From NCBI RefSeq assembly GCF_035594765.1, contig NC_085841.1, forward strand, positions 206,716,155-206,780,154: a stretch of 64,000 nucleotides of DNA, given 5' to 3'. This DNA is from Anolis carolinensis (lineage: Eukaryota). The notes beneath the pieces were generated by a model. The model searched no databases and had not been told where the DNA came from. It saw only the letters and a list, made by a program, of their open reading frames with translations. This document shows, piece after piece, positions 218 to 61,302 of the stretch. How positions within the stretch are numbered: the stretch's first letter is position 1; every line of letters starts with the position of its first letter. Made by a program: the position numbers and the translations under genes.

Positions 218-412
218 GGGTTGCTGTTAGTTTTCCAGGCTGTATGACCATGTTCCAGAAGCATCCTCTCCTGACGTTCTGCCCACATCTATGGCAGGCA
301 TCCTCAGAGGTTGTCTGCCATAGATGTGGGTGAAACCTCAAGAACATGGCCATACAGCCCGGAAAACTCACAGTAACCCAGTGATCCCGCCGTGAAAGCC
401 CTCGACAACACA
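218..412. mobile_element. Penelope-like element fragment (inverted repeat) in the presumed Hoxd9 3'UTR
   Basis: gggttgctg..gagttttcc..gctgtatg..ccatgttccagaagc family sequence followed by its reverse complement; about 100 nt downstream of the Hoxd9 stop. Confidence 0.85.
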
Positions 413-511
413 TATGCATATAATGTTCACAATAATGAATCCCTCTTTATGTGCGAGTAGAAACCCCTCCAGACATCTAACACCCCACTCAAAGCAGTCC
501 CGCGTGGATCC

Positions 512-753
512 TTAGTCCCCTTTGTTGTTTTTCTCCTTGTTCATCTTTTTCATTTTCATCCTCCGGTTCTGAAACCAGATTTTGACCTGTCTCTCTGTGA
601 GGTTTAAAATCCTAGCCACTTCGTAACGCCGGTCCCGGGTGAGGTACATGTTAAAGAGAAATTCCTTTTCCAGTTCCAGCGTTTGGAATTTGGTGTAAGG
701 GCAGCGCTTTTTCCGCGTGGAGCGAGCGTGGATCCAGTTGGCCGCGGGGTTAT
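512..753 (-). CDS. HOXD9: Hoxd9 exon 2 (homeodomain)
   Basis: Hand translation after the acceptor ttctctag: (N)[87 protein letters not shown] and the C-terminal KGD* match HOXD9. Stop at 512-514. Not in the ORF track. Confidence 0.95.
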
Positions 754-990
754 CTAGAGAAGTGGAGTGGGGTTAGGATTGGAGGGGAGTGGGGGAGAAG
801 AGAAGAGCGAGGAGGGAGAAAAAGCCAAGGGGGGGGGAAGCAGGGAAAGGGTTGGGGTTTGGGAAGGGAAGAAGAGAAGAGAGAGGAGGGAGAAAAAGGA
901 AAAGGGAAAAGAGGGGAGCGGGTTGGGGTTTGGGAAGGGAAGAAGGGCAGGAAGGGAAGGAAGGGAAGAGGGGGGGAGAGAAGGAAGGTC
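754..990 (+). repeat. G/A-rich low-complexity tract in the Hoxd9 intron
   Basis: About 230 nt of almost pure purines with many GGG runs. Confidence 0.8.
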
Positions 991-1159
991 GTTAAATTAA
1001 TTTAACGAAGGACGCCTGCTCTTTTCACCACCGAGGAGGAATTATCATAAAAGTCTGAATGGCCCAGTCTGTTTACTGTACAAATGATGGTAGTAGTAGT
1101 GGTGGTGGTGGTGAGAGGGGGGAGCCCCTCTCTTTCTGAATCTCTCTCTCTCTCTCTCT

Positions 1160-1263
1160 CTTTATTTTTATGGGCGCTTGTTGCTCCGCGTCTAGACGTT
1201 TTTATAGGTTAGTAAAACTATCAGTTTTGCACATTGGAGCCTTACGGGTCGGGGGGCAATAAA
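1160..1263. promoter_or_regulatory. Candidate Hoxd9 intronic element with clustered Hox/Cdx motifs
   Basis: TTTTATGG, TTTTATAG, GTAAAA and CAATAAA within 100 bp of non-repeat DNA. Confidence 0.45.
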
Positions 1264-1331
1264 TCAGAGCGGGTGGGGGCAATTTCTTTCCTTTGCTCTC
1301 TCTCTCTCTAGTAGTTCCCTTTCCAACTTAC

Positions 1332-2130
1332 TTGGGTCAAGTTGCTGCTGCTGCTGCTTCTCCTCTTTCGGGTCACGGCTGGGGCTGGCGTTGCGGCTGC
1401 TGGCGTTGCTGTGGGGGGCGCCAGCGGGGTTTGGGGGCGCCCCGTTGCCGGAGGACACCTTCTCGGCCAGGAAGGGCCCTTGGGGGAAGTCTCCGGGCCC
1501 GGCGGCGATGCCTTGGGGCTCCCTAGGAGGGGCGCACTCGGTCCTTTCGGGAGGAGGAGGAGGAGAAGAGGCAGAGGCGGAAGCGGAGGCAGAGGGGGCC
1601 CCACTTTCCGGCTTCACCAGTCCATAGTGGCGGGCGCTGGAGGGGTGGAGGGTGGGCGCAGCGGTGGAGGGGACTGGGAGGGTGCCGTTGCCGTTGCTGC
1701 TTCCGCCGCCGCCTCCTCCTGCTGTTACTGCAGAGCTGCTGCTGTTGTTGGCAAAAGGGGCGAAGGGCTCGATCCAGGAGCGCACGTACCTGCCGCCACT
1801 CTCTCCAGAGCCCCCCAAATGCGGCTGGGGCATGTACGGGTGGTAAATCCCCGGCATGGGCTGAGGAGGAGGAGGAGGATGAACCGGCGGCCAGGACCCG
1901 GCGGCGAAGACGGAAGAGGAAGCCTTGGGCGCGAAGCTGCAGGAGGCGAAGTCCGAGGCGGAGGCGGAGGAGGAAGAAGGCCGGGGCGCCGATTGCGGGT
2001 GATGGGGGGCTCCCCCTGCCAGGAACCGGGCCGAACCCCCTCCCCCGCCGCCTCCATAAACCTCCTCGCCGTTGTCGTGGCCTATGAGGGCATCCACGTA
2101 GTAGTTACTGATTGTGCCGCTCGACGACAT
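1332..2130 (-). CDS. HOXD9: Hoxd9 exon 1
   Basis: MSSSGTISNYYVDALIGH...FASCSFAPK...GRYVRSW...LDP, then donor A|gtaagt (1331-1326). 799 nt, phase 1; spliced protein is 346 aa. Confidence 0.95.
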
Positions 2131-2445: not shown

Positions 2446-2927
2446 GCTCAACTGGGGCTGCAAAAGAGAGGGAGGGAGGGAAAGGGGGCGAAGAGGGAGG
2501 GGAGGAGGGGGCTCGCATCAACCCACAAGGACGAGGAGAGAGGGAGGGAGGGAAGGGAGATCCAAAATGAAGGCTACAGCCAAAGCCTAGGCAGGCTCCA
2601 GAGCAGGCGTGGCCTTACCTACCGGGAGAAAAGGTCGCCACTGCCACTGCCGCGAGTGGGGCGGACTATTTCTTCGCCTCTTGGGAGAGAGCCCTGACTG
2701 CCATTCATTCATCCCTGCCAGCTCAAATCCTGCCAGCCTTGGCTCCTCTCTTGCCAGAGAAAAATGTCCTCCTCGGCCAAAGAAAGAGATAAATGAGGCG
2801 AAGGAGAAAGGAAGGCAGGGATCCACTCATACAAACTCTAGGGAGATCCTGTTAAAAACAAACACTTCAAAACATTAGATTGTTGATCTGAGCGCGAGTA
2901 ACGACTCTCTTCATCAAACAAGGCAAT

Positions 2928-3147
2928 GGGTTGCTGTAAGTTTTTCGGGTGTATGGCCGTGTTCCAGAAGCAAGCTTCCCTAACTTTTCACCCACATATA
3001 TGGCAGTCTTCCTCAGATACATACCTCACAACCACTGAGGATGCCTGCCATAGATGTGGGTGAAACGTCAGGAGAGAATGCTTCTGGAACATGGCAATAC
3101 AACCCGGAAAACTCACAGCAATTCCGGGCATGAACGCCTTCGACAAA
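2928..3147. mobile_element. PLE inverted-repeat fragment
   Basis: Same family as 218-412; plus arm carries CTGAGGA...GAAACGTC. Confidence 0.85.
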
Positions 3148-3730: not shown

Positions 3731-3880
3731 GGCCCCTTCCATACAGCTGAATAAAATCCCACATTTTCTGCATTGAACTGGGATATATGGCAGTGTGGAC
3801 TCAGATAATCCAGTTCAAAGGAGATATTGTGGGATTTTCTGCCTTGATATTCTGGGTTATGTGACTGTGTGGAAGGACCC
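3731..3880. mobile_element. Harbinger-like MITE
   Basis: TIRs ggccccttcca...tggaaggacc; many related copies in the window. Confidence 0.75.
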
Positions 3881-5880: not shown

Positions 5881-6200
5881 TGTATTGTCGAAGGGTTTCA
5901 TGGCCAGAATCACTGGGTTGCTTTGAGTTTTCCGGGCTGCATGGCCATGTTCTAGAAGCACTCTTTCCTGACGTTTTGCCTGCTCCCTCATAGGTTGTGA
6001 GGTCTGTTGGAAACTAGGCAAGTGGGATGTATATATTTGTGGAGTGTTTAGGGTGGGAGACAAGAGTTCTTTCTCCCACTTGTCTAGTTTCCAACAGACC
6101 TTACAACCTCTGAGGATGCCTGCCATAGATGCAGGCGAAACATCAGGAAATAATGCTTCTGGAACATGGCCATAAAGCTCGGAAAACTCACAGCAACCCA
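5881..6200. mobile_element. PLE inverted-repeat fragment
   Basis: Family sequence in both orientations. Confidence 0.85.
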
Positions 6201-7272: not shown

Positions 7273-7550
7273 TTAAGAGAAGGTCAGATTAGCGGTCAGT
7301 TCTCGGATTCGGTTCTCTCTGCTCATCTTCTTGAGCTTCATTCTGCGGTTTTGAAACCAGATCTTGACCTGCCTGTCAGTGAGGTTTACGCTCTTACTGA
7401 TCTCTAGGCGGCGCTCTCGAGTGAGATACATATTGAATAAGAACTCTTTCTCTAATTCCAGTGTCTGATGTTTAGTATAAGGACACCTCTTCTTTCTGCC
7501 ACTCTTTGCAGTTAACCAATTGCTGGTTGGCGTATCAGACTTGATTTCCT
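7273..7550 (-). CDS. HOXD10: Hoxd10 exon 2 (homeodomain)
   Basis: [36 protein letters not shown]...[15 protein letters not shown]; acceptor ttttgctag| at 7551. Confidence 0.97.
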
Positions 7551-8685
7551 CTAGCAAAATCAAAGGAGAAAGAAGGAAGGAAGGAATAAAATAAAAAGAA
7601 GGAAAAGGGAGAATACACACACATGCACACACCTCAGTGACTTATATAGTGTACCCTTGGCCATGAACCCACCTCCATTGTGTCTGCCAAATATGGTGGC
7701 TTGTGGGTATCAAACATTGCTGAAGGCTGAGTTTGAACACAATGGTTTCCAGGTGCGAATTAAACAATGACCAGGCGAATGAGCCAATGAGCTTTTCTGG
7801 GTAGCTTTTGTTGCTTTACAGTATACAGGCTACATCTTCTGCATCTAGAGATGCAGAAATAGATTTCAAATATTCTACAGCATGGGGAAGAATCCTGCCA
7901 CCTTCCCAATGTATCACGTTTCCTTAGGTATCTTTTGTAGAAACCAATGTATAACCTGGAAAGCCACTTAATTCACATCTCCGTTAAAACATTTTAATCC
8001 ACATTCATTTTGAAAAATGAGTCCATTTTATAATACCCCCACAATTAGCCAGGAAAAACCAATATGGCCTTTAGAAAAAAAAAACTTTCCACTAATAGAA
8101 AAATTGAAAGAAAGAAAAAACAGAAATACCCTGCAGAGCCATATTTTTTCCATTCAGGATTGTTTCCCCTCATTAGAGGCAAAGTTGACCTGGACTTATT
8201 AGTGAAATTGCAATTGCCTGCTAATCTTTTCCCTTTAATCAGTATATAATTAAGACCAAATTCACAGCAGGGCTTGCAAAGGTTTTCTATTTAAAAAATT
8301 AACTAAAGGCGCTTTCCGTTTGATTTGTGTTTTTTAGCTTTTGGCTCTTCCACCATATGATCCCTCCTTCAAAAGCTTGTGGACCCCCACCCTTTCCTAA
8401 AGGACAATGAAATAAACATTCACCCCATCTTTAGGAATTTAATTTCAGCCTCTAGGTCCTATTTCACCTTAAGAAACCCCATTTAGGTCACCTCAGTTTG
8501 GGTCTCGTGGACCAGGAGAGAAAGGGCCATGCTTTATTGTACATCCTCAAACTTTCTCCCCTTCCTTTTTTAAAGGGGGAAAATTGGGGAGGTGACCCTT
8601 ATTTTGAACAGTGGTGTTCAGGAAGACACAGAGGAGGAAATATTCGATCCCAGTCTGATCAAAAGGAAAAGCGAACTGAGATCCA

Positions 8686-8839
8686 GGGCCCTTCCACACA
8701 GCCCTATATCTCAGAATATCAAGGCAGAAAATCCCACATTATCTGTGATGAATATATGGTAGTGTGAACTCAGATAACCCAGTTATTGTGGGATTTTCTG
8801 CCTTGATATTCTAAGATATAGGGTTGTGTGGAAGGGCCC
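8686..8839. mobile_element. Harbinger-like MITE in the Hoxd10 intron
   Basis: About 55-bp TIRs gggcccttccacacagccctatatc... Confidence 0.8.
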
Positions 8840-9176
8840 TTAGGGGGGAAAAGAGAAAGCCATGGGGTGGTATCATGCAGCAGCCAGGCAAAAGGGGGAG
8901 AAGAAAAGGGGGAGTGCTTCCTCCCCAAAAAGGGGTGCTTCTCTACCCCTTCATTTTGCCACCCACATCCCTGAAAACTTGAGAGAACCTGGCACCAAAA
9001 GAGAGAGACACAGAGGGATAGGAAAAAGAGAAAGGGGCTGAGGAAGAGATGGGGAGAAAGAGAGAAGGGTTTTCCTGCTGCACCATGAATGGTGGCTATG
9101 CTAGGCAGGCACTTCTTACTGTGCTTTAGGCAACCAAGTGAGGAGGAGGACCACCCAGCCTGGTGAGGATACCGAC

Positions 9177-10023
9177 CTTTGCTATCTTTCTCCTGGGCTT
9201 CGGGGCTGGAGACGGGGGCTTCCGGCAGACAGCCCCTGTCTTCTTGAAGCGAGACGGACTTGGGCTCGGGACTTTCCACTTGGGCGACTTTGGCGGAGTT
9301 GTTGTCTGGGTGATGGTGGTGATGGTGGTGCTGGTGGTGGTTGCTGCTGGTGGTGCTGCTGGCATTGCTGCTGCTGCTGTTGGCATTGCTGCCGCTGTTG
9401 CTGGGGTTCTCGTTCATTTTCTTCTCCATCGGGACCTGCGAGGCGAGCTGAGGCTTGGAGGCGCCGCGAGGGTTGAGCTGCAACATGACAGTGGAACTAC
9501 TCGCCTCTGGGCCGTTATTGTACTCTTGGGCTTTCCCCGCCGTGGCGTAGGTCTGGCTGAGCCTGAAGTATCCTGGGACGGGGACCTCGGGGTTCTCGAT
9601 GGGGCACGAGTCAGAGACCAGCCTCTGGTAGGAAGGGACCTCGGAGGCGGAGGACACCAGCTTGGACCTCTTGTCAGAATACATGCAGCAGTTGGTCTCT
9701 TCCTTAATGTTGGCCGTGAAGGAGCAAGTGGGGACCTGCTGCGTAACAGGTTGCTCTATTCGGCAGGACCTGCTCGGGTCTGTCCAATTGTCTACTTGAG
9801 GGATATACGGGTGGACGTTCATACCCATATTTTGATGATTGACCTCTCGTTTGGCCAGAGACGGCAGGAGTCCACAGGTTTGCATCCCATACGTCCCAAT
9901 GTCTGTGCTAGGTGGCATGTACATGCTGGCGCTGTTGGAATAGAAGCTATCGCTCCTGCAGGCACTGATCAAGGAGTCGACTAGGAAAGTATTGGCGGCA
10001 GGAGAGCTGTTGGGAAAGGACAT
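9177..10023 (-). CDS. HOXD10: Hoxd10 exon 1
   Basis: [28 protein letters not shown]...[15 protein letters not shown]...EKDSK; donor G|gtcggt. 847 nt, phase 1; spliced protein is 374 aa. Confidence 0.96.
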
Positions 10024-10779
10024 TTTGGGGAGGAATTGGGAGGAGAGAGATTGTGTCCTTTGTAGGCTGACATCTCTACGAAAACATTCCCTGTGTAATT
10101 GTGGGTGCCTCTGCGCAACCACATGACGGCTAAGCCAATGAGAGGGGGAAATGGCCTTGAGCCGCTACCTCCCCGCCACTCACGTGGTGCCCGGGACACT
10201 CGGCCGAGGCGCAAAGGCGGACAACAGCGACACCTGGGACGTCCGGGCGGAAGTGCAGCCGCCCAGCGCCGCCTCTTTCGCCCCTTCCTCCTCCGCCTCT
10301 TCCAGAGGCGGCAAAAGCAGCAGTGCTACCCACAGCAGCAACCTTTTCTCCCCCCTCGCCAAGCCATGCTTCACCCCCCCCCCCCCCCCCCGAAAAGCCA
10401 TCCTTGGCGCACTGCGCTGATTTAAAGCGAAGATATTCATGGAAAAGACCTGAACCCCCCCCCCCCCCCCTCTTCCATCCACACACCTTCCTTTTATTCA
10501 AATCTTCCTCTTAAAAAAACAAAACAACCAAAGTCCTAAGCAAGGCACTGTCCGAATTCAGCCTGATCCTGAAGAACTTACTCCTGTCTGCTTTGGCTCA
10601 AAAATACTGAGGCAGGTACTTCAGCACATTGCTTTTTAAGATTAGCAAAAAATGAAGAATTCCCTTTTCCTAATGATTCCTAGTGCCACCATTGATATCC
10701 AAGTGCAATAATGAACAATTACGGGTGACAATTGCATTGGAATGGCTCCTGTTATATGTGTGATTTTAAGCTATTGTTT

Positions 10780-11006: not shown

Positions 11007-11293
11007 GGTGATCACACCTGATGGTGATGATTATGATAATAATAATAATAATAATGTGTTGTCGAAGGCTTTCCTGCCCAGAATCACTGGGTTGCTGTGA
11101 GTTTTCCAGGCTGTATTATCATGTTCCAGAAGCATTCTCTCCTAACGTTTCACCCACATCCATGGCAGGCATCCTCAAGGTTGAGGGCTCGACCTCACAA
11201 CCTCTGAGAATGCCTGCCATAGATGTAGGCGAAAGGTCAGGAGAGAATGTTTATGGAACTTGGCCATACAGCCCGGAAAACTCATAGCAACTC

Positions 11294-11345
<52 letters not shown>

Positions 11346-11834
11346 GCGTCATACAGTTGCTGCTTCAACCAACTTCATCAGCCTCTCCATTAACAGACAC
11401 CAATGCTGTCCTCAGAAGAACCTTCCAAGGAAAGAGGTCTTAATTTGCAACAAGTCTTCCCCCTTAAACCCGCCACATACATTTCCTTCATTCCCTTCAA
11501 AATCAGGAAAGTCTTTTCAAAAGATACGGTATCCATCCACAGGCGAAAGATGCGGTGATCACACCTGATGATGATGATGATGATGATGATTATGATGATG
11601 ATGATAATGGGTTGCTGTGAGTTTTCCGTGCTATATGGCCATGTTCCAGAAGGATTCTCTCCTAACCTTTTGCTCACATCTATGGCAGGCATCCTCACAA
11701 CTTCACAACCTCTGAGGATGCCTGCCATAGATGTGGGCAAAAGATCAGGAAAGAATGCTTCTGGAACATGGCCATAGAGCCCGGAAAAATCACAGTACAC
11801 TAGTGATTCCGGCCATGAAAGCCTTCGACAACAC

Positions 11835-13609: not shown

Positions 13610-13789
13610 GTCAAACATACAAGAGCTCTTTCTCCCACCCTGAAAACTCCAGAGATAAATAAACCTCACTTGCCTAGTTTCCAACAGACCTCATAACCTT
13701 CGAGGATGCCTGCCATAGATGCGGGGAAACGTCAGGAAAGAATGCTTCTGAAACATGGCTATAAAGCCCGGAAAACTCACAGCAACCCA
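13610..13789 (+). mobile_element. PLE fragment
   Basis: caagag.tctttctcccaccctg...ggaaaactcacagcaaccc. Confidence 0.8.
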
Positions 13790-14594
13790 CTTATGATTAT
13801 ACTTTGGTTAAAAGGGAAAAAAAGCAATGCCTTTCGTGCCTTTTTTTTTTTTTTTTTTTGCTGAAAACACCCTTTCCTCCCTATTTTCCCTGCTTGTGGC
13901 AATGAGACAGACCTTTTAAAAAGCTGATCGCAGCTGTTCAAATACAACATCATTGTCAGGTTAAGGGAGGCTGGCTTTTCCGGCGGGGCTGAGCCATCCT
14001 CGACATTTCTGTTTTGGAAATTGTGCCCTTGTTCCTGGGGGATTGGTTTCGAAATAAAGGAGCGGAGCTACACGAAGGAAAAGAGGAGATAAATCGGGGC
14101 GGATGGATGAGGAGGATAGTGCCAGAGCCCGGCGTGTTTGTGTTTGTGTTTGAGGCAGAGAGAAAGAAAAAGGGGGGGGGATCTATCTCTCCCTCTGTTT
14201 CCACCCTTCTTCCTTTCACCCCACCTTCCATTTAAGATCATTACCAGAGCCATTGCTAAGATTTTGTCTGAGCTGGGCGAGAAACAAAAGTGGAGGTCAC
14301 GATGCTCCTGCTTCGGGGGCGGCTCTTTACGCCTTGGCCAGCAGCAATTCTCCTTCTTCTCCCTCCTTTCTTCCTCCCCAATCCCCTCCAAACTAGACGC
14401 CAGGCGACCCACCGAGTTTAAAGCATCCCCCACACCCCCTCGGCCTGCCCTTTAAGACTTTCCCCGTGAAATCTAATCAGGGACTCCATTCCCCATCCAC
14501 GGCTCCTGCCTAATCCTTATTTACACTGAGCAGACGTGTCCTCGAAATATCCCAGTAGTCCCATCTTTCTGGTTTATTTTATTCCATTTTATGG

Positions 14595-14751
14595 NNNNNN
14601 NNNNNNNNNNNNNNNNNNNNNNNNNNNNNNNNNNNNNNNNNNNNNNNNNNNNNNNNNNNNNNNNNNNNNNNNNNNNNNNNNNNNNNNNNNNNNNNNNNNN
14701 NNNNNNNNNNNNNNNNNNNNNNNNNNNNNNNNNNNNNNNNNNNNNNNNNNN
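14595..14751. other. Assembly gap
   Basis: Run of N. Confidence 1.
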
Positions 14752-14913
14752 NTGTTTTGCGTCCCTCTGGGCTCTGGCATTGTTTAATGAACTCCTTCCT
14801 TTTGATCCATAGGATGCATCCCCTCCTAGATATGAGATATGGATCCCTCAGTCTAGGATCTCCCATCAGTTTGTTATAGGCAAAGGCAGCCCATTGATCC
14901 CAAAACATCACTA

Positions 14914-23804: not shown

Positions 23805-23889
23805 ATTTTATTGCTCCACAAACCCCGAATTCCGTCCCAATCCCCATCCTCCTCCCAGCACTACCTTGAAGCCCATCGCAACGGGTTTC

Positions 23890-42761: not shown

Positions 42762-43373
42762 TGTGATGTCCAAAGCTTTCATCACTGGGTTGCTGAGAGT
42801 TTTCCGGGCTGTATGGCCATGTTCCAAAAGCATTCTTTCCTGACGTCTCACCCACATCTATGGCAGTCATCTTCAGAGCTTGTGAGAAGTATGTTGGAAA
42901 CTAGACAAGTGGGGTTTATATATCTGTGGAATGTTCAGGGTGGGAAAAAGAACTTAACAGAAAGGAGGAAACCACGAAAATGAACAAAATCTGGGTACCA
43001 GTATTTTAAAAAATTCTAAAAATCAGTACAGTAAATAAAGAACAACACTCAGAAGACAGGGGAATTTCAGACAAAAAACAATCAAGACAAATTAACACCT
43101 CCCAACAAAGGATCCCCCCAGGCAGAAAGCAACCAGGCTTTGAAACTGCAAGGCTATTCAATGCTAATCAAGCTGGTCAACATTCACATTTGCCTCAGGC
43201 AGACAAGTGCTCTTTCTCCCACCCTGAACATTCCACAAATAAATAAACCCCACTTGGCTAGTTTCCAACAGGCCTCACAACCTTTGAGGATGGCTGCCAT
43301 AGATGTGGGGGAAACGTCAGGAGAGAAGGCTTCTGGAACATGGCCATACAGCCAAGAAAACTCACAGCAACCC
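42762..43373. mobile_element. PLE inverted-repeat fragment
   Basis: Inverted pLTR, then ORF tail, then pLTR. Confidence 0.85.
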
Positions 43374-45034
43374 AATTTAGACCTTCCCAGTTAGGCTCAC
43401 AGTATTGTGCTTAGGTGCCATCAAATCACTTATCAACTTAAGGCGACCTCATGAACCCCATAAGGGTTTCTTAGGTAAGGCATACTCGGTTTAGCTATTG
43501 CCTTCCTCTAAAATCCAATCTATACCAGATATAAGAAATTATTTGAGGAATTCTGTGAAATGGGCAAATTGGGTCCCATCTACAATGACCATTAAACCAG
43601 TTTGAAACTAGTTTCAAACGTGGCAGCCAGACAGCAGGCTCACACAAAAGTCAGAGGGGGGGACCCTTAATGCCTATCATTGCTTTGTGAGTTGTGTCAT
43701 GACCATCTGAAGCCCCTTCCACACAGCTGAATAAAATCCTATATTTTCTGCTTTGAACAGTGGCAGTGTGGACTCTGATAACCCAGTTCAAAGTAGATAT
43801 TGTGGGATATTGTGGGATATGGCTCGGTGGAAGGGCCTTAAGCCTCACACTGATTCCAGGATTTTCTTTGTAATAATCTGCATAAAGAGGGTTTGTATAG
43901 CAACTCCCAAAGAATCTGCTTGGGCCCTTCCACACTGCCATATATTCCAGTTCAAATTAGAAAATGTGGGATTTTATTCAGCTGTATGGAAGGGGCCTTC
44001 GCGGCCCTCCCCTTTCCCCACAAGCCTTATGAGAAAAGTTACTTTCGAGGACTAAGACTCCCGGAATTCCCGCCTCTCCAGCCACCATGACCAGTACAGT
44101 CTAAAAAGTAGCTTTCTCTGGCTCTGCGATTAGGCTTTGCCTCAGACCTCTCAACTTCTTCCTCCGATTAACTCTTCTCACTGACCTAATATGGAGAGCT
44201 TGGAAGGCCTCATTTCCCCGTCTGCCCTCCTCGTCCTTCTCAATCCCATTTAAAACAAAACAAAACAAAATCTTGGAGATTATAGTCCTGTCCAGATTTT
44301 GCCTCCTAGTTTTCAGGCCCATGCCTCCGGCCATTCCACTCCACACCACTTTCTTCTATCAAGGAAGACCAAAACCAACCCCCAACTCCTCCTTGGCTTT
44401 GAACGCAATCTTTAAAGCATTAGCTCTCTCCCTTCCCCCCAGCCCCACAACACGGTCCTTCAGACCACACAGGCAACGCCAGAGGATATTGCTCACGGCC
44501 ACTACCTCTAATTTTTATGGGTTGACTGATGTCTCCCAATTGAGCCTCTCTTATTAAGTCTTTGGGCTCTGCCTTCCTCTGGGTTTCAACCCCGAATGAC
44601 TCAAGGGGGGGAAAGGCCCAAACAGCCTTCTGCCCCGACAGCTTAGCCATAGCCCCTCCTTTGCGCTGCCAGTGCCTTCATTTTTTAAAATTGAAAATGT
44701 ATTCTGTTTTCATTGACATTTATATCCCGCTTTTCCTCCAATGAACTGAAGGTAGCATATAGGACTCTGACTGCTCACTTTATACACATAACCAACCTTT
44801 GAAATGTGAATTTTAACGTTTAACGAAGAATATGCCATCCAAATGAAGTTCCTACAGAAATGTCTGCACTATTTACATTTTTGTAGATTATTTTATTTTA
44901 TTAACTGTTATATTTATATCCTGCCTTTCCTCCAACATACTCCATGCAAGTTTATATTGTGCATGTAAAAGAAACATGCAAGCACTCAAACGCACACAGG
45001 AAAAATATCAACAAACTAGAAATATATTTGAATA

Positions 45035-47050: not shown

Positions 47051-50000
47051 TTAAACTATTAGTCCCATCTTGACACGGAGGTCTTGGAAACCATCTCTAG
47101 GTAATGGTTTAGTCAAAATGTCCGCCACCATCTCTTTTGTTGGACAGTATGTCAGTTCAATCGTTCCATCTTGAGAAAGTTTGCATACAGTATGGTACCT
47201 TATTCCAATGTGCTTTGTATGCATCATCATATTCTCAGACTTGGCAAACTTGATACAACTTTGGTTGTCCTCAAAAACATGAATAGGTTTCTGCTCATCA
47301 ATTCCAAAGTCAGTCAGAAGTTGATGAAGCCATAAAAGTTCATCTGATGCTATGCATTCTGCCTCTGTAGTAGATTTAGCCACTAATTCTTGTTTCCGGC
47401 TGGCCCAAGCGATAGGACCGTCTACGTACAGAAACAAGTATCCGCTGGTTGATTGACAATCCGAAGAATCACTAGCCCAGTCAGCATCTGAGTAACAAAT
47501 CAATCTTGGTTTGTCACTTGCTGGTAACTTCAATTGTAAGTCCATTGTTCCTTTCAGGTATCTTACAACTCTCTTGACACCTATCCAATCTCTCTGAGTA
47601 GGTGCATTGACCTTTCTGCTTAGAATTCCAACAGCAGACGATATATCTGGTCTTGTATTGGTAGCTAAATATAGGAGCTTTCCTATAGCAGTTCTATACT
47701 GGTTGTTGTTTGGCAAAAGTTCACTTTCTTCATTTTTCTTAAGAAATCTGTAGTCATTGGTGTAGCTACTGTTTTTGCATCTTGAAGTCCGGTAGCTTCC
47801 AGCAAATCTACAATCTTTTGCCTCTGACTCAAGAGAAAAGATCAATCTTCCTCTCTCTTGATTTGTATTCCAAGATAGTACATAGCATCGCCAAGTTCCT
47901 TCAATTCAACATGTTTGCTCAAATATTGTACAACCTCGGTGTAATCTTCATCTGATTGACTTGATACAATAAGATCATCTACATAGGTCAGAATAAAAGT
48001 ACAATGTCCATTTTTGGTTCTAGTATACAAACACTGATCTGCTTCTCCTTGCTTGAATCCCAGCTACTTCAGCATTTCATCTAATTTCTCATTCCAGGCT
48101 CTTGCTGATTGACGAAGTCCATAGAGACCCTTGTGAAGTTTAGAAACAAGGTGAGGTCTTCTCTTTTCCTCAAAACCAGGTGGTTGTCTCATAGACTTTC
48201 GGAAATCTTTCCATGCAGAAATGCAGTCTTAACATCTAGATGTCGTACAGTCATCTTCTTTGAAGCTGCAACACTTAGAAGTAGTCTTATGGTGCTGTGT
48301 TTCACAACAGGTGCTGTGTTTCACAACAGGTTCTGAGAAAATCCCTGAGCAACTAGTCTCGCTTTGTAGCACTCAATTCTTCCTTCTGCATCTCGCTTTA
48401 ATGTGAATACCATCTGCATCCAATTGGCTTCTTACCGGGTTGAAGTTCAGTTAGTGTCCAAGTTCCATTCTTGTGTAGAGCATCAATCTCTTCTTGTGCT
48501 GCTTTCCTCCACTGTTGAGCTTCTGTGGCAGGCAGCATCTCAATTTTGTGGATTGTTCACTGGATAATGTTGACTCTGCATGGTAAGACAATATCGAGGG
48601 TGGTACACCTCTGTTGGGACGCAATGAATACCTGTGAGTTTGTTCTGGAAGACAACCTACCTCTGCAGATCCATCTAGTCCAGGACCCAACTCATCAGCA
48701 TCATCTTCTGGCTCTCCTGTTTGTGTACTTCCTGTAGCATCTTTGGTGCGTTCTTGCCTCTCTGGATGGACTCCTGTGGCATTTCCAGTGTATCAATTGA
48801 AGAAATTGTTGGTATATCATCAATGGACTCTATAAGCTGTAAAGTAGTATTCTCTCCTTCATCTGAAAAATCTAGCATAGTCCCTTTTAGATTGACTTTG
48901 GTCTGTTCATCAAAATGCACTACATGTCGTGTAGATACTTCACCAGTCATTAAGTTCAGGACTCTATAACCCTTATCTTCAGGTGCATAACCAACTAAAA
49001 TAGTTTGTTCAGATCTACAGTCCAACTTGTGCCTTTTCTGCTTGGGAATGTAAGCATAAGTTATACTTCCAAACTTTTTGATGCGTTTCATACTTGGCAC
49101 ATTACCAGTCCACAACTCAAAAGGAGTCTTAGTAGCACCTTTTGTTTGTAGACGATTCTGAAGAAAGGTAGCAGTGACAAAAGCTTTGCCCCAAAGGCAA
49201 TCTGGAAGACTTACATCTTTTAACATACACCTTGTCATCTCAACTAGAGACCTAATCTTCCTTTCAGCCACTCCATTTTGCTGAGGAGTATAAGGAACAC
49301 TCTTAATATGCTGAATTCCATTCTCTCCCAGGAATCTCTGTATGCGGTGTGAAGTGTACTCACTACCACAATCAGTTTGAATAGCTTTTGGTGTGCATCC
49401 AAACTTAGTTTTCACCATAGCAACATATCTCTGCAACATGTCTTGAGCTTCAGATTTATCTTTCAAAATGTAAAAAACACAAAACCTCAAAAAATCTTCT
49501 AAGAAAATAACTGCATAACGATTTCCTCCATATGAAGTCTTAAAAGGTCCACAGATATCTCTGTGAATTAAATCTAGAATCTTAGTAGATCTCTTTTCTG
49601 GGTTGACTGGAAAAGAGGGACTCACTGCTTTCTGTTGAACACAGACTACACATTTATCAAAAGCTGTATTACTAATCTAAGGGTTTGTAGCCAAATTGTC
49701 CTTCTGCAACTCAAAACGTCTATGCCAAATTTCAAGATTCTTTCCATCAACATGTGTCTTAACTATGTTGGCTTGCTCAGATGAAACACACAATTCATAC
49801 ATTCCATTCTTTTCAAAAGCTTTGGCATACAAAACACCTTCTTTTGTAATATCACATTGACTATTCTCAAAATGAATTGCAAATCCCTTCTTGTCCATGG
49901 AACTAACACTTAGCATGTTGTACTGAAGTGAATCAGTGTAAAGAACATCTGAAATCTCTGTTTCAGCAACCTCATCAGGCAAACTACATTTTACAATACA

Positions 50001-51010
50001 CTTTCCAGATCCTTTTATTTTCAATAAATCTCGATTAGCTACTCTCAGATCACCTTTAACTCATTGACTCAGTTCAACAAAATTCTCAGAGTTATTTGAG
50101 CTATGCTGTGTACAACCTGAATCAACAATCCAAACATCATCTTTATCTTTGTTCTCATTAATTGTTAAAATAGAATGAGCAGCCATTAAACCTCTATGTG
50201 ATTGTCTGTTTCCAGCAGGCTTATTTGTAAAAACTTTCTTTTCCTGCTTTACTTGCTTATTGCCACTAGATGGCGTGCCATCTCTCTTTGGTAGATGACA
50301 AAACCTCACAATGTGACCAAATTTACCACAATTAAAACATGTACTCCCCTTTGGGCTCTCCCTTGAAGCTCTGCCCCTATGAGGGTGGCTACTTGACGCC
50401 ATGTAACTTGATTCATTTGATCTAGAACTATCCACATGTGAACTTCTATGCTGGTCATCAAAGAAGTCTCTGAACCTCACAATAGCCAAATTAAAAGTTA
50501 TATCTGGATTTGATTCAATGGCAGACATATATAGCTCGAAGGTCCTTCCTAAAGATCCTACCAAAAGTCCAACCTTATGAAAATCTTCAATGTTAAAACC
50601 AGACATCTTTAACTTATCAAGCATTTCTGTAAAAGTCTCTAAATGTTTATCACACTCTTTCTTACCATTAAGCTCTGTTTCATAAGTCTCTTCAACAATC
50701 CAATCGCAGCCAGCTTAGAAATATGACAAAATGTGCATTTGAGTGCTTCCAGCATATCTTTGGCTGTTTCACAATCTCTGACATACATCATTTGCTTAGT
50801 TTTCAGAGTAGAAGTGATCAAATATCTGGCTTTTGCATCCTTCACCTTCCAATATGAAATAGCTTGCTCATTAGTCTCTGGACATGCTCTCTGAATACAA
50901 TCCAACACTCTCTCATACTCCAGTAGTATCAATACTTTATCATGCCAATAATGAAAATTATGGCTGTTCAAATCTTCTCTCAACAAATGCAATATCTCTC
51001 TATTATCCAT
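47051..51010 (-). pseudogene. Fragmented copia gag-pol
   Basis: CCHC knuckle CFNCGKFGHIVRFC; protease WIVDSGCTQH; integrase DLIHRDICGP...TDCGSEY...QNGVAERK; RT TYVDDL; RNase H YSDADWA...EDNQSCI...ADILTKPL. Multiple stops and frameshifts. Confidence 0.93.
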
Positions 51011-53733: not shown

Positions 53734-53864
53734 GGCTGGATCTACATTGCCCTATATCCCAGGATCTGATCCCAGATTATCTGGCAGTGTAGACCCATAT
53801 AATCCAGTTTAAATCAGATAATCTGGGTTCAGATCCTGAGATATAAGGCAGTGTAGATCCAGCC
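53734..53864. mobile_element. Harbinger-like MITE (ggctggatctaca type)
   Basis: Long TIRs; relatives at about 54578-54724, 61320-61470 and 63009-63210. Confidence 0.75.
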
Positions 53865-54335: not shown

Positions 54336-55159
54336 AACAACAGAAAGATATTTGAACAGATAGTAAGAAAGAGGTAGAGATAACAAACAAATAAACAGGA
54401 GCACTCTAAAAAATACCTCCCCCAAGCAACTGGGAATACAGGTTCTTCCATACCAACAGGAATTCTCATAGCAAAAAAACTTGTGTATCCTAGAGTCACT
54501 TTTGATATAGGGAAATCTACCACATATTTTTTCTTGGCAACATTTATTCAGAAAGAGTTTGCCTTTTCCGAGACTGAGGTCCATTCTACACTGCCATATA
54601 AAATCCAGATTGCCTGATTTGAACTGGATTATATGGCTGTGTAGACAATATAATCCAGTTTAAAGCAGATAAGTGGAATATCCACTTGGATAACCTGGAT
54701 TATATCGCAGTGTAGAAGGGACCTGAGGGGGAGTATGGCTTGTCCAAAGTCACCCAGTGATATCCAAACAATATCTACTAAGAAACAAACCTGATGAATT
54801 TGTCACTTATTTCCAAATGGTGGCATGCATTAATGGAAACTATGCACCTCCTCTGAGCAACATGTTCCATTGGCTTCAGAGACGATCACTGCTCTCACAT
54901 CACAATAATTTCCCCTTCAATAGAGGTTGCAGTCAGCAGCACACAACAATGGAAACTGCATAATATTCAGGAGGGTTTACTCCGCAAAATATGGTGATGC
55001 TTTAGTTGCCAGTCCAGAGGGAATGATCTCAAAAACCTTTATGTGAAAACATTTTCTACCTAAACCAATGTAGCTAGATTTCTTTCTAATTAAGGAAGAG
55101 AAACTGGCTATACTAAACTGCGTAGAGGGGAGAAGGTTAGTGCACCTCTATACATGTGT

Positions 55160-55367
55160 ATGTGTTTTCAAGCCACCTGTCAACATATAACAAACCCCAT
55201 GAATTTCATAGGAATCCTTAGAGGTAATTTTGCTAGTTTCTTCCTCTGAAATATCACCAATAGCATCTGATATTCATTGATTGTCTCCCATCTAAGTACT
55301 AACCAGGACTGACTCTACTTAGCTTCCAAGGTCAGTTGGGATCTGATGTCTTCAGGGGATTTAGACC
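55160..55367 (-). mobile_element. 5S rRNA-derived SINE
   Basis: Minus strand ...ggaagctaagtagagtcagtcctggttagtacttagatgggagac resembles 5S boxes A and C, followed by a non-5S body. Confidence 0.7.
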
Positions 55368-56146
55368 TGTCTCACCTCTACTTTCATTGAATTTAATGTG
55401 GAATGATGAATCATATCAAACAAAGTGATTCAGTAGGTGAATCAGAGTTGCAAACAGCAAGTGCTTTGAGGCCTATATCTTATCTTCCTTGTGTATGAAC
55501 ATTTCCAGTGTACACACCAGCAGAGTGCCCCACTCAGCTACCAGAAAGAACAGTGACTCATTCTTCAAAGAATTTTTATGGGACTACAGAAGCACAAGCC
55601 CTAAAGCTCCAATAAATCCTGAGTTAAACAATTCAGAAATAAGATCAAGAAAGAAAGAGTTATTTGACCCACTTCTGTGTCATTTCACATTGCTTAACAC
55701 TAAGAATATTTGTCAATTGCAAAGGTAAATTCTTATTCCCCGTCTAAAGATTGCAAAGGTAAATATTTATCCCCAGTCAAAGACCAGGGAATGTGAAGAA
55801 GACAGTTTGAATTTCTGATGAAAATAAATAGCTATCATCTCAGTCTTGACCATGGCACCTATATTGTAGAATTCATGCAGTTTGACACCACTTTAACTGT
55901 CATGACCCAATGCTATGGAATCCTGGGATGTGTCATTGGCGAAGAGAGCAGCACCTTTTGGCAAAGAAGGCTAAAGTCCTTGTAAAACTATATCTTCCAT
56001 GATTCCTTAAACTGTGCCATGCCAGTTAAAGTGACATCAAACAGTATTCTACAGAGTAGAATCTACTCCGTGGATACATTCCCAACAAGTTCAGTGGCCA
56101 TATACTGTTGGAAATTACAACATTCTTGAATCTTCCTCTAGTAATT

Positions 56147-57410: not shown

Positions 57411-58532
57411 TCTGCATATATATTATGGAGTAAACAACAAAACCACTGAACCAAATCACACCAAATTTGGCCACAAAAGACATAGTCATCCAAAATATGT
57501 CTTTCAAACAAAAACATAAAAAACCTAGAAAAATAAAGTTCAAATTAGAGGATTTGCTGCCAGTTAGAAGGCTAGGCTCTGCCCACTTCGTCTCCTAGCA
57601 ACCTGCTTGGCGAAGGGACAGCCAGAGTTCAGTTAGGCCTCTTCCACACTACCTATAAAATAGAGATTATCTGATTTGAACTGGATTATATGGCAGTGTA
57701 GACTCAAGGGCCTGCCACACACCTATATAACCCAGAATGCCAAGGCAGGATATCTGCTTTGAACTGGATTATCTTGAGTCCACAGTGATACATAATCCAG
57801 TTCAGTGTGGATTTTATACAGTTGTATAGAAGGGGCCTCATATAATCCAGTTCAAAGCAAATAATATAATATTATAAATATAATATATAAATTACTGTGG
57901 TATAATAATACAGAACAATATAATCTCTAAAATCAGGACAGTAAATAAAGAGCAACACTCTGAAAACAGGGGAAATCCAGAAAGGAAACAACTAGGGCCA
58001 GCTAACACCTTGCAGCTTAAAGCAGTCAGGCTTTAAGCTGCAAGGCAATTAAATGCTAATAAAGGTGACTAATTGCAGCATTCATACTTGCTGCACTGAG
58101 ACTATTCATTGCTATTCAACCTGGCCAACCAAGAATTCCACAAGGTAGAAAGCGGCCGGGTTTGCAAGCAGCAAAGGCTATTCAGTGCTGTTCAACCTGG
58201 CCAACCAAGATTTCCCCTAGATAGAAAACCCTCAAGTTTTGAAGCCACGAGATTACTCCGTCCTATTCAACCTGTCCAAGAAAGCGGCCAGGCTTTGAAG
58301 CAGCGAGGCTATTCAGTGCAATTCAAATTGGCCAAAAAACCATTCCCCTAGAATGCAAGTACTCAGCCTTCTAAACAGAAAACCTATTACATTGTATTCT
58401 AGCTCACCAAACAAGGATTCACATAAGAAGAAAACAGCCAGGCTTTGAGGCTGCAAGGCTATTCACTGCTATTCCACCTGGCCAACAAATGATTCCCATA
58501 AGCCACAGCAACGCGTGGCCGGGCATAGCTAG
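57411..58532 (+). mobile_element. Composite non-autonomous Helitron
   Basis: A|TC 5' end (tentative); 3' hairpin ccacagcaacgcgtgg then CTAG|T; contains MITE and PLE pieces and an internal tandem repeat. Confidence 0.75.
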
Positions 58533-59259
58533 TTGTCTTATAAATATGGTTCAACGGAATGCAATTAACAAGAAAACTGCGCCAGAACCCACCCGGTTTC
58601 CCTTTACTGCCATGTTCTTTCAATTAAGGCGTCAAAGCCTGTTCCAAATCCATGCATTTCCCGGCTTTCTCTGGCTCCGAGTCTATGCCTCAGTTTGTCC
58701 AGCAGATGACAGTGTTGTTCTACCCAAGAAACCACCAAGAGTGCCTAGTTCACAACTACTATGGCCGCCTTTGTGTATTAAAATTACCCTCAGCCAAGGA
58801 TTGCGGGAAAGCTACCCTGCATTTCCAGAAGTATTTTTTCCTTGCTGTTGTTCTTAGTGTTCGGTGCTAGCAGGCCAAATATTCAGCAAAAAATGAAACA
58901 AGGGGGTTTCGCTAGAAAGGGCCTGAAAAATGGAACACAGGAAAGATGGAGGAACTTGGCAATGCCCTTGTGCCCATTAGAAGACCGTGGTTAGCTTCCG
59001 GTGTCATAATAATCCTTGCTTTCTCATCCTGGAATTCTATTTCAATCTCGCATGTGTGTCTGTCTCCCCTCTTTCTTGATTTAAACTTTATTTGTGAGCA
59101 AAGATGGCCAAGGGTCAGAGACTTTACAGGTTGTCAAGGCAGCAAGTTTCAAGTTCATGGCAGGCTGACCTCGGTCCCTTTCCTTTCCTCCTTTCCTCCC
59201 TTGTCCCTTCCCTTTCTTCCTCCCTCTATTATTCCCTCCTTCCCGCCATTCCTTCCTTC

Positions 59260-60094
59260 TGGGTTGCTGTGAGTATTCCGGGCTGTATCGTCATGTTCCA
59301 GAGGCATCCTCAAAGGTTGTGAGGTCTGTTGGATAGTTATGCAAGTGGGGTTTACATATATCTGTGGAAGGCCCGGGGTGGGAGAAAGAAATCTTGTCTG
59401 TTGGAGGCAAGTGAGAATATTACAGTTCATCACCTTGATTAGCATAGAAAAACCTTTCAGCTTCAAGGTCTGGCTGATTCCTGCCCTAAGGAATCCTTTG
59501 TTATAGGAGGTGTTAGCTGTTCAACCAACCTGGACACAGAATATTATTTGAAAATACAGAAATGCTGGACCACTCTAACAACCACCATGTCAGACTACAC
59601 AGAGGAGCCATTGAAATCCACAAGCCTGTGGACAATTTCGATAGAAAGGAGGAAACCATGAAAATGAACAAAATCTAGCTACTAGTATTACAAACTTCTA
59701 AAACCGGGACAGTAAATAAAGAGCAGCACTTACAAACCAAAGGAATTCTAGGCATGAAACAATCTGGGCCAGTTAACACTTCCCAACAAAGGATTCTCCC
59801 AGGCAGGAATCAGCCAGGCTTCAAAGCTGCAAGGCTATTTTATGCTAATCAAGGTGATTAATTGCAATAGTCACACTTCCCTCCAACAGACAAGAGTTCT
59901 TTCTCCCTCCCTGGACCTTCCACAGATATATTACCCTTACTTCCCTAGTTTCCAATATACCTCATACCCTCTGAGGATACCTGCAATAGATGTGGGCAAA
60001 ACGTCAGGAGATAATGCTTCTAGAATATGGCCATACATCCCGGAAAACTCACAGCAACCCAGTGATGCCGATCATGAAAGCCGTTGACAACACA
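59260..60094. mobile_element. Longest PLE fragment, with GIY-YIG endonuclease C-terminus
   Basis: 59523-59690 reads NQPGHRILFENTEMLDHSNNHHVRLHRGAIEIHKPVDNFDRKEETMK, between inverted pLTR arms. Confidence 0.88.
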
Positions 60095-60994
60095 TTCCTT
60101 CCTTCCTTGGAGGCAGAAGAACGAGATTGTTGCTTTATTACAACTATAGCAAGCACACTGAATTTATTCTTGAATTTCGACTCGGCACTTAGCTTACACT
60201 TTTTTATTGAATGGCTCTAACTCTACCAAGGACTAGCCATAGCATTGAGGCCCGAGGCGAATATAAACTTTTGCTTCTTTATATCAAAGCCGTCTGGAGC
60301 CTTCTGCAGGGTGAGCCCTGAGTAAGTGATTTCAGGAGGGCAACTGCAGTTCATATTTCAGTCACGTGTGAGCGTGTATATGTTTCTCTCTCTCTCTCGC
60401 TCGCTTTCTCTTCCCCTCCTTCCTTTTCTAGCTCCCTACTTCCCTCGACACAGAAGGAAAATTATACCCAGTAAACTAAATTTTCTCTTGCTTTTAATGA
60501 AGCTTCATTGGGAGTACGGTCTGAACAAGCTGGACAAGTTCACGTACCGAGAGTAGTACAAATGCGTTCTGAGTTTTTTAAAGAGAGGGAGAGGAGAATG
60601 TAAATGATAAAATTTAAACAACATATGTGTTTAATATGCAAATAGTAATGTTTATTTTGTCAATTGTTGATTTAGAATGGTTGTGATTTTTGAACTGGAG
60701 TGGAGCATCCCAAGAGAAAGGTAGTACAGAAGAGGTGATTTCTGTGTTCACTAGTAATATTTCACATTACCTTTGTTATTGCTGCTGAGTTTATATCCTG
60801 GAGTTCTTCATGTTTACCACTGTGTTTTGTTTTACTGGAAGCCGCCATAAGTCCCCTCCGGGAGATAGGGCGGGTTATAAATAAAGCATCAGTATTGTTG
60901 TTGTTGTTCTTGTTATTATTATATTCCTAAGGGTTCTGGTTCGTGGACTTCATCCAGGCAGAAGAAGAACTTTGAAGTATCAGAGGTTGCAATA

Positions 60995-61302
60995 ATTCAA
61001 GAAACAATCGGGGCCAGCTAACACCTCTCAACAAAAGACACCCCAGGCAGGAATCAGCCAGGCTTTGAAGCTGCAAGGCTATTTAATGCTAAACAAGGTG
61101 GCTAATTTCAATATTCACACTTGCCCCCAACAGACAAGAGTTCTTTCTCCGATCCTGGACATTATTCCACAGATATAGAAACAGTTGTGAGGTCTGTTGC
61201 CTAGTTTCCAACAGACCTCACAACTTCTGTAGATGTGGGTGAAACGTCAAGAAAGAATGCTTCTGGAACATGGCCATACAGCCCGGAAAACTTTCAGTAA
61301 CT
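60995..61302 (+). mobile_element. PLE fragment
   Basis: Family sequence, locally rearranged. Confidence 0.8.

Follow-up and report, generated by a model that had tools for sequence, protein, structure and literature searches.

The window, 64,000 nt of Anolis carolinensis DNA, covers the anole HoxD region from Hoxd9 to Hoxd12, with the genes on the minus strand. A tblastn search placed homeoboxes on this strand at 560-715, 7327-7497, 22636-22806 and 36451-36621. The ORF at 1264-2130 shares 94% identity with Hox-D9 of A. carolinensis and matches Pfam Hox9_act (5.5e-30); together with the four homeoboxes it bears out the Hox-cluster setting proposed in a first-pass annotation of this DNA. The labels Hoxd10, Hoxd11 and Hoxd12 are presumed from cluster order, and the presumed Hoxd10 matches Pfam Homeodomain (9.7e-22).

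560-2130, minus: Hoxd9; exon 1 ORF 1264-2130, homeobox 560-715
7273-10122, minus: presumed Hoxd10; homeobox exon 7273-7632, long upstream ORF 8770-10122
22636-25150, minus: presumed Hoxd11; homeobox 22636-22806, exon 1 ORF 24248-25150 (PF12045)
36415-38731, minus: presumed Hoxd12; homeobox exon 36415-36936, upstream ORF 38054-38731

The annotation described a dominant repeat carrying a hammerhead ribozyme core, and local blastn indeed found 34 arms of such a repeat in the window, from about 21 insertion events. The sites with the hammerhead motif are copies of this one repeat and not independent events. The 35-nt motif, CUGAGGA-U-(6-bp stem, 7-nt loop)-GAAACGUC, is exact on the plus strand at 28279-28313 and 35201-35235, the two copies ranked best in the annotation. 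A hammerhead scan, proposed at the same time, gave a divided result: the pattern CTGANGANGCCTGC-N(3-12)-GCAGGCGAAACGTC matched the plus strand at these two sites (0 expected in shuffles), but no Rfam hammerhead family matched, even at E ≤ 10. Allowing up to 3 mismatches to the commonest 35-mer of the family gave 13 sites (0 expected). All of the near-intact copies listed previously are present, each with one defect, named below with the formally intact motifs.

28279-28313, plus: formally intact, right arm of foldback 28176-28380; core without defect, helix II 6/6 Watson-Crick, helix I 3/3, ACGU; Hoxd12-Hoxd11 intergenic region
35201-35235, plus: formally intact, single arm 35192-35288, intergenic, with sequence of the pseudo-LTR (pLTR) end upstream
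18863-18897, minus: formally intact, left arm of foldback 18799-19007; weak helix II (2 Watson-Crick pairs and 4 G-U wobbles), G10.1-U11.1
3035-3069, plus: near-intact, C11.1>U; right arm of foldback 2927-3121
6110-6144, plus: near-intact, G16.2>A (ACAU, palindrome lost); arm of head-to-head pair 5907-6200
21161-21195, plus: near-intact, G16.2>C (ACCU); single arm 21153-21239
32080-32114, plus: motif with U16.1>C; single arm 32071-32170
33551-33585, plus: motif with G10.1>A; arm 33542-33643, facing a 5'-truncated arm at 33122-33188 (minus)

The class assignment made earlier, a minimal type I hammerhead of Penelope-like elements (PLEs) with helix III absent and a palindromic ACGU, is correct. 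The minimal hammerhead (min-HHR) class of metazoan PLEs was described in 2014 (Cervera and de la Pena, PMC4209133), and all 4/4 of its features are found in the window motif: an unpaired nucleotide between A9 and 10.1, G10.1-C11.1, palindromic 15.2-16.2, and helices of unequal length, II being long and I short. As in the window, PLE min-HHRs are type I, lack helix III and loop 3, carry a palindromic 15.1-16.1 tetramer, are located in the pLTR and are massively dispersed as single motifs or pairs on opposite strands (PMC4209133). At 3 bp, helix I here is shorter than in Schistosoma (4-5 bp) and longer than in D. virilis (2 bp); the reptiles named in that study are a turtle and snakes, not anoles. 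A further source on min-HHRs is Lunse, Weinberg and Breaker (RNA Biol 14:1499), as cited in PMC6765202. The GCAGGC given previously for the 3' strand of helix II holds for the two best copies, but the family majority is GUGGGC, as in the published anole element Poseidon_Ac. Three arms have GCGGGC, from which GCAGGC and GUGGGC each differ by one CpG transition.

Judged by its sequence, the window repeat is the pLTR/ORF junction of Poseidon_Ac, a PLE of the Penelope/Poseidon clade from A. carolinensis (Frangieh et al. 2024, PMC11167929; Repbase entry, Arkhipova 2006), and not a new ribozyme. The Poseidon_Ac consensus ends in ...cctcacaacctctgagg and starts with atgcctgccatagatgtgggcgaaacgtcagg... 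(supplement of PMC11167929); joined in tandem, end and start give the majority motif of the window, including helix II GCCUGC/GUGGGC. Compared by eye, repeat and consensus do not differ in the 57 nt that follow the ATG, and identity over 114 nt is about 92%. In the published geometry the start of the ORF coincides with that of stem II, C3 and G8 precede the ATG, and the cut lies 26 nt after it (PMC11167929). All three points hold in the window repeat, where the ORF ATG is A9-U-G10.1 of the hammerhead. Two translations of window copies agree with the N-terminus of Poseidon_Ac_1p (MPAIDVG...GHESLRQ): the minus-strand motif at 18863-18897 reads MPVIDVGETSGKNASGTWP... from its ATG, and the plus arm of the foldback at 11605-11809 reads MPAIDVG...GHESLRQ through the tail.

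The anatomy of the copies is that of the same retroelement. Arms share common 3' ends and vary in 5' truncation (query starts 1 to 56). The 3' ends fall at about +84 or about +114, two classes separated by 30 nt, matching the published reverse transcription (RT) start at 111-118 and the 30-40-nt tail between two start sites (PMC11167929). Thirteen head-to-head pairs account for 26/34 arms. In 8/8 tight foldbacks the tail is at one end only, as in Fig. 2 of PMC8557442, and tail-less ends adjoin AT-rich DNA or microsatellites. In contrast to Poseidon_Ac itself, the window copies are all truncated, with no ORF beyond +114, and no full-length copy with RT or GIY-YIG was found within the window. 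The remaining arms and pairs are as follows.

214-385: foldback, about 150-350 nt downstream of the Hoxd9 homeobox; both arms dead (minus arm G12>A and A13>G; plus arm without C3/U4)
2927-3121: foldback upstream of Hoxd9 exon 1; tail on plus arm only
5907-6200: head-to-head pair; longer arms reaching pLTR-end sequence, internal deletion in minus arm
11081-11299: foldback; minus arm C3>U, plus arm G8>A and adjoining an (AAT)n microsatellite
11605-11809: foldback; minus arm C3>G, G12>A and adjoining a (GAT)n microsatellite; plus arm G12>A
13691-13794, plus: single dead arm, C3>U, U4>C; the copy closest to the N gap
19390-19462, plus: single arm, helix II deleted, tail present
30694-30798, minus: single dead arm, G8>A, tail present
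31374-31491: short foldback of two strongly 5'-truncated arms; hammerhead part gone
34429-34535, minus: arm with core intact, helix II broken (3/6 pairs); faces 35192 (plus) across 634 nt
35980-36080, plus: arm, G8>A; just downstream of Hoxd12 exon 2
37524-37573, plus: short decayed fragment without hammerhead, within the Hoxd12 intron
40508-40728: foldback, arms about 96 nt, 0 nt spacer, predicted MFE -174.7 kcal/mol; plus arm motif 40636-40670 ACCU (G16.2>C), minus arm A6>G; tail only on minus arm
42781-43376: head-to-head pair, arms at least 170 nt; both motifs dead (A14>G; C3>U)
59260-60066: head-to-head pair, long arms; minus arm hammerhead deleted, plus arm G12>A
61230-61304, plus: arm 5'-truncated or deleted; core missing

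The N gap at 14595-14752 lies within non-repeat DNA, about 800 nt from the nearest arm (13691-13794), and is irrelevant to the hammerhead finding.

With the homology, anatomy, decay pattern, strand and position of the copies as observed, we consider it highly probable (about 0.93) that the repeat is a 3'-terminal piece of a Poseidon-type PLE and that the HoxD copies are truncated insertions that have decayed neutrally. Each unit would combine the last part of the pseudo-LTR with the initial 84 or 114 nt of the ORF that follows it in a tandem transcript. Since reverse transcription would begin within the ORF, at two fixed sites, and would often end prematurely, even short insertions would nearly always include the junction and hence the minimal type I hammerhead. 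Insertion as head-to-head inverted pairs would be common and would account for the palindromic appearance. In an active Poseidon the ribozyme presumably serves to process the RNA of the element itself, acting as a dimer and/or together with the encoded protein. The copies in HoxD would have been dead on arrival and decayed neutrally afterwards, a few retaining the motif by chance. The hammerhead motifs in HoxD are mostly decayed end-pieces of the already published Poseidon and, as such, already known. Divergence of the copies from their own majority is about 10-12%. Between +58 and +114 they diverge by about 8% from the active Poseidon_Ac consensus, from which they differ at positions 58-91, and they therefore belong to an older or related subfamily.

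Decay is evident in the motif itself. It is formally intact in 3/34 arms, about the number that neutral decay predicts, since a rough expectation is 2-3 among 24 full arms. Identity to the majority was 0.927 in the core, 0.929 in the functionless loop II and 0.878 downstream. Among the arms there were no compensatory helix changes, and pairing was no higher than in shuffles.

The annotation had further suggested that transcripts crossing HoxD could self-cleave. In the fullest form of this idea, the copies are working ribozymes that cut read-through, antisense and enhancer RNAs, as dimers or with Poseidon protein, and so affect Hox regulation. We regard this as very improbable. Three motifs are formally intact, but the remaining 31/34 arms are broken, and conservation in the core does not exceed that in loop II. 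The two best copies are intergenic and on the plus strand, and so run antisense to each of the four Hox genes; of the intact motifs, that at 18863-18897 alone has the sense orientation. Both this motif and that at 28279-28313 are predicted to be wholly buried within foldback hairpins of about 95 bp, with predicted MFEs for the whole foldback of -144.1 and -147.6 kcal/mol, respectively. For 35201-35235, a rod-like alternative fold of the 58-nt context is predicted at -20.5 kcal/mol versus -13.2 for helices I and II alone. The parent element is reported to be active in the green anole and to be expressed there, and its hammerhead cleaves in vitro with PAc protein, activity being knocked out by C3G or G8C and rescued in the double mutant (PMC11167929). 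However, in those 2024 tests cleavage occurred only with PAc added, and no RNA-seq reads starting or ending at the cut site were found (PMC11167929). Activity of the template RNA required the first 172 nt of the ORF, whereas the inserted copies end at +84 or +114; protein binding to the HoxD copies may therefore be poor. A further point in favour is that the arms at 35192 and 35980 (both plus) have the same orientation about 790 nt apart. Metazoan PLE hammerheads, for which dimer action was proposed, cleave poorly in vitro even as dimers (PMC4209133). Under a double-hammerhead model mixed pairs could in principle act, since an enzyme-competent 5' half survives in 8 arms and a substrate-competent GUC-AGG half in about 20. 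Also in favour, altered HoxD13 expression has been reported in anoles with TE-rich Hox clusters (PMC6791295). On balance, any cleavage of host transcripts by the HoxD copies is probably negligible.

Even less probable is that the ribozyme is irrelevant and the foldbacks have been co-opted in HoxD as sources of hairpin or small RNAs or as regulatory DNA. The predicted hairpins are very stable (-144 to -175 kcal/mol), and miRNA precursor models match with 53 bits against a gathering score of 70; all such matches fall below the respective gathering scores and occur on both strands, as for any long hairpin, and the foldback arms are 74-93% complementary, i.e. decaying. Least likely of all, the palindromic units would be MITE-type DNA transposons with a chance resemblance to the hammerhead core: 8 loci are near-perfect foldbacks (arms 37-96 nt) and the weak Rfam matches are to miRNA-like hairpins and not to hammerheads, but the sequence is a retrotransposon pLTR/ORF junction that translates to its N-terminus, the motif has every incidental feature of the published class (PMC4209133), many arms are single with variable 5' truncation and fixed 3' ends, and in the foldbacks it is the centre that varies, the fixed 3' ends lying outermost and only one side bearing the tail, unlike a transposon with defined terminal inverted repeats.

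The Poseidon pieces can also be compared with retrozymes. Non-LTR retrozymes are tandem hammerhead repeats that give circRNAs, and their type I hammerheads are related to those in the pLTRs of PLEs (Cervera and de la Pena 2020, PMC7229834); in a preprint, retrozymes are proposed to be non-autonomous PLE derivatives (Li et al. 2026, 10.64898/2026.07.22.740005). Retrozyme units are head-to-tail and their hammerheads canonical, whereas the window copies are single or head-to-head, and the window contains no head-to-tail array. A. carolinensis is reported to have Hox clusters exceptionally rich in TEs (Feiner 2019, PMC6791295, citing Di-Poi 2009/2010 and Feiner 2016). The same richness is directly visible here, where the load from Hoxd9 to beyond Hoxd12 comprises about 21 Poseidon insertions, a copia-type element and other repeats. 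Feiner 2019 contains 0 occurrences of Penelope elements and 0 of ribozymes; the present analysis names the TE family behind part of this load.

The hammerhead motif reported in this HoxD window by the first-pass annotation was correctly recognised and is an already known feature. The pattern CUGAGGA-U-GCCUGC-(7 nt)-GCAGGC-GAAACGUC was found exactly at 28279-28313 and 35201-35235 on the plus strand, the two places that the annotation had put forward as its best copies, and had no match in any of 100 dinucleotide shuffles. When up to three mismatches to the family's commonest 35-mer were allowed, 13 sites were found, with 0 expected. Since these 13 sites are copies of one repeat, their excess over chance marks a repeat family and not independent selection. 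The further copies named by the annotation are all present; five on the plus strand carry one defect each, and one on the minus strand is formally intact. The N gap at 14595-14752 falls within non-repeat sequence, ~800 nt from the nearest copy, and is irrelevant to the motif copies.

Further copies of the hammerhead motif in the window
3035, plus strand: near-intact motif, C11.1>U
6110, plus strand: near-intact motif, ACAU
21161 and 40636, plus strand: near-intact motifs, ACCU in both
33551, plus strand: near-intact motif, G10.1>A
18863-18897, minus strand: formally intact motif, helix II wobble-rich with two Watson-Crick pairs

Local blastn placed the motif in a repeat unit of ~100-115 nt, present in the window as 34 copies (arms). 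When the arms were aligned in ribozyme sense, their 3′ ends were common and their 5′ truncation was variable, the longer copies extending upstream into common sequence. The 3′ ends form two classes 30 nt apart, at ~+84 and ~+114. The 30-nt 3′ extension that separates them (the tail) passed our tail score in 11 arms and is partial or internally deleted in 5 more. Twenty-six arms are joined in 13 head-to-head pairs, their 5′ ends towards each other and their 3′ ends on the outside, and 8 of these pairs are tight foldbacks (214-385, 2927-3121, 11081-11299, 11605-11809, 18799-19007, 28176-28380, 31374-31491 and 40508-40728). The tail is confined to one arm in 8/8 tight foldbacks. Because the protein of Poseidon_Ac (PAc), a Penelope-like element (PLE) of Anolis carolinensis, cleaves and extends both DNA strands (PMC11167929), we infer that this one-sidedness would agree with priming twice, on opposite strands of the DNA, from the two different start sites of reverse transcription. 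The microsatellites (AAT)n at 11298-11343 and (GAT)n at 11566-11607 directly adjoin the tail-less 3′ ends of two arms.

This is the anatomy of a retroelement. A MITE would have fixed terminal inverted repeats and a defined unit, and was rejected since the arms are truncated variably at the centre, the 30-nt extension is one-sided and many arms are single. A non-LTR retrozyme is built of head-to-tail tandem hammerhead units. The window lacks such units; its pairs are head-to-head, and same-strand arms are never closer than ~790 nt.

The motif itself agrees with the minimal type I hammerheads (min-HHRs) described by Cervera and de la Pena in 2014 in the pseudo-LTRs (pLTRs) of PLEs. Those ribozymes lack helix III; positions 15.2-16.2 are palindromic, the base after A9 is unpaired, G10.1 pairs with C11.1, and helix II is long while helix I is short. 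They are often dispersed singly or as opposite-strand pairs (PMC4209133). The window repeat has all of these features, including the single and paired dispersal. In the 24 aligned arms the unpaired nucleotide between A9 and 10.1 is U in 22, the pair 10.1-11.1 that closes helix II is GC in 13 and GU in 6, and helix II, of 6 bp, is 92% paired. Helix III and loop 3 are absent; the palindromic ACGU tetramer, with which a dimeric helix III is possible, is kept in 18/34 arms and lost elsewhere. The core boxes (C3 U4 G5 A6 N7 G8 A9; G12 A13 A14; A15.1...U16.1 H17, the last being the cut site) are without defect in 12/34 arms.

Pattern search finds the motif, and the covariance models do not: none of the hammerhead families in Rfam 15 (type I, II, III, HH9 and HH10) matched anywhere in the window at the gathering score or at E<=10, and 151 nt taken from around the best solo copy likewise had no Rfam hammerhead match at E<=10. 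The Rfam hammerhead models expect helix III, and this limit of helix-III-dependent models is known. Rfam matches in the window were limited to sub-threshold ones to miRNA hairpins, caused by the foldbacks.

The parent element can be named. Poseidon_Ac was studied by Frangieh et al. in 2024, and its hammerhead has C3 and G8 before the ATG and a cut site 26 nt past it (PMC11167929). In the window the ATG is A9-U-G10.1, and GUC ends exactly 26 nt past the ATG. Reverse transcription of Poseidon_Ac begins internally, 111-118 nt into the ORF, with a 30-40-nt "tail" between two start sites (PMC11167929); the arms of the window correspondingly end at ~+84 or ~+114. The Poseidon_Ac consensus in the supplement of PMC11167929 ends with the pLTR sequence found before CUGAGG in the window and starts with the sequence that follows; the repeat is the pLTR/ORF junction of the element. 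Compared by eye, the consensus and the window majority are identical over the first 57 nt past the ATG and share ~92% identity over 114 nt. Window copies also translate to the published N-terminus of Poseidon_Ac, including the stretch encoded by the tail. PLE insertions are known to be often 5′-truncated, to adjoin a truncated copy in inverted orientation, to carry the tail on one side only and to target microsatellites (Craig et al. 2021, PMC8557442), and the window repeats this with its 13 head-to-head pairs, one-sided tails and two arms at (AAT)n/(GAT)n. No ORF of an autonomous copy, with telomerase-like reverse transcriptase and GIY-YIG endonuclease, was found in the window, where integrase and gag of copia type, at 47-51 kb, are the sole retroelement domains. 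The window copies are truncated fragments, so the missing ORF does not speak against a PLE origin.

The copies lie among the genes of the HoxD cluster, which were located by their homeoboxes and N-terminal exons.

Hox coding features of the window
560-715, minus strand: homeobox
7327-7497, minus strand: homeobox
22636-22806, minus strand: homeobox
36451-36621, minus strand: homeobox
1264-2130, minus strand: N-terminal exon, Pfam Hox9_act
24248-25150, minus strand: N-terminal exon, PF12045

By colinearity the window extends from Hoxd9 past Hoxd12, with every gene transcribed from the minus strand. The ORF at 1264-2130 is, over 99% of its length, 94% identical to Anolis carolinensis Hox-D9, compared with 76% for A. 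sagrei, which identifies the window as HoxD of the green anole or a very close relative. Upstream of Hoxd12, at ~47051-51010 on the minus strand, are the remains of a copia-type LTR retroelement, whose separate ORFs encode an integrase core, a retroviral SH3-like domain, a gag zinc knuckle and a fragment of gag. Sequencing runs X4-X9 (16-27 million letters) contain about half of the words sampled from a 5.9-kb HoxD stretch, which suggests that they are targeted data sets of the clone or capture type for the HoxD locus and not whole-genome or RNA runs.

The copies in the window are decaying freely. Only 3/34 arms have everything that is formally required, and the others carry killing substitutions (at C3, A6, G8, G12, A13 or A14), deletions or broken helices. 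Where the motif is covered (24 arms), identity to the majority is 0.927 in the core, 0.929 in the functionless loop II and 0.878 in the 56 positions downstream. Multiplying the survival rates observed at the single positions gives a rough expectation of 2-3 intact motifs for the 24 arms; 3 were seen. In no helix pair are both partners changed, and pairing is as frequent as in column shuffles; with 24 copies of one young family this is expected, and so weighs little on either side. A single CpG transition separates each of the helix II strands GCAGGC and GUGGGC from GCGGGC, which occurs in three arms, and the two strands thus give no evidence of selection for pairing.

From the motif the first-pass annotation had gone on to suggest that transcripts crossing the HoxD cluster could be self-cleaving. 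The copies at 28279 and 35201 on the plus strand are antisense to every Hox gene in the window, and both are intergenic between Hoxd12 and Hoxd11. The sole intact copy on the minus strand, at 18863, is the one with two Watson-Crick pairs in helix II. The foldbacks holding the 28279 and 18863 copies are predicted to form whole-foldback hairpins of -147.6 and -144.1 kcal/mol, respectively, in which the entire motif is buried. In short isolated transcripts a predicted rod-like alternative fold, with CUGA paired with UCAG, beats helices I and II by 7-10 kcal/mol. Even in dimeric form, the hammerheads of metazoan PLEs are poor at cleavage (PMC4209133). The anole Poseidon_Ac hammerhead cleaves only with PAc protein present, and no RNA-seq reads start or end at its cut site (PMC11167929). 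To be active, the template RNA of Poseidon_Ac had to include the first 172 nt of the ORF (PMC11167929); because the window copies stop at +84/+114, PAc protein may bind them poorly. The suggestion of self-cleavage is therefore unsupported, given the few intact arms, the antisense and intergenic position of the best copies, the burial of motifs in predicted hairpins and a parent inactive without PAc.

In the double-hammerhead model one motif supplies the catalytic half and its partner the GUC-AGG half. A competent catalytic (5′) half is kept in 8 arms and a competent substrate half in about twenty. Just downstream of Hoxd12 exon 2, the single intact arm 35192-35288 and the arm 35980-36080 (G8>A) lie ~790 nt apart in the same orientation on the plus strand. 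Under this model the intact core of the 35192 arm would cut the GUC of the 35980 copy and not 35235. Judged by sequence alone, such mixed pairs may occur. In tissues that express Poseidon protein, the 8 enzyme-competent arms might pair with the many GUC-AGG halves and cut intergenic or antisense HoxD transcripts; we regard this as highly improbable. If it were true, a protein-assisted ribozyme borne by a transposable element (TE), acting through Poseidon protein and mixed arm pairs, would modulate posterior Hox regulation in anoles. The repeat would bear on Hox regulation only through copies that cleave host RNA in vivo, and such cleavage is unlikely.

Earlier publications cover the motif, the element it comes from, the odd anatomy and how rich in TEs anole Hox clusters are. 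As a discovery the finding carries little weight, the class having been published in 2014 and the anole hammerhead tested in 2024. Descriptions of how heavily TEs load the Hox clusters of anoles date from 2009-2019 (PMC6791295). PMC6791295 mentions neither Penelope nor ribozymes, so naming the TE family here is a small gain in annotation: one family behind part of the expansion of anole HoxD now has a name. The window is also a clean textbook display of PLE insertion anatomy within a developmental gene cluster, with both 3′ start sites, tails on one side only, arms folded back head to head, and microsatellites as targets.

The window also contains another family of palindromic repeats, whose sequence is not related to the Poseidon ends. 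It forms MITE-like foldbacks at 53734-53864, 61318-61472, 39400-39510, 3753-3838, 63620-63705, 57666-57865 and 54574-54727, and matched models of miRNA precursors, mir-607 and mir-605 among them, below threshold. At 55255-55371 on the minus strand a weak 5S rRNA-like match scored 29.8 bits, under the gathering score of 38; it may be a SINE derived from 5S or be due to chance.
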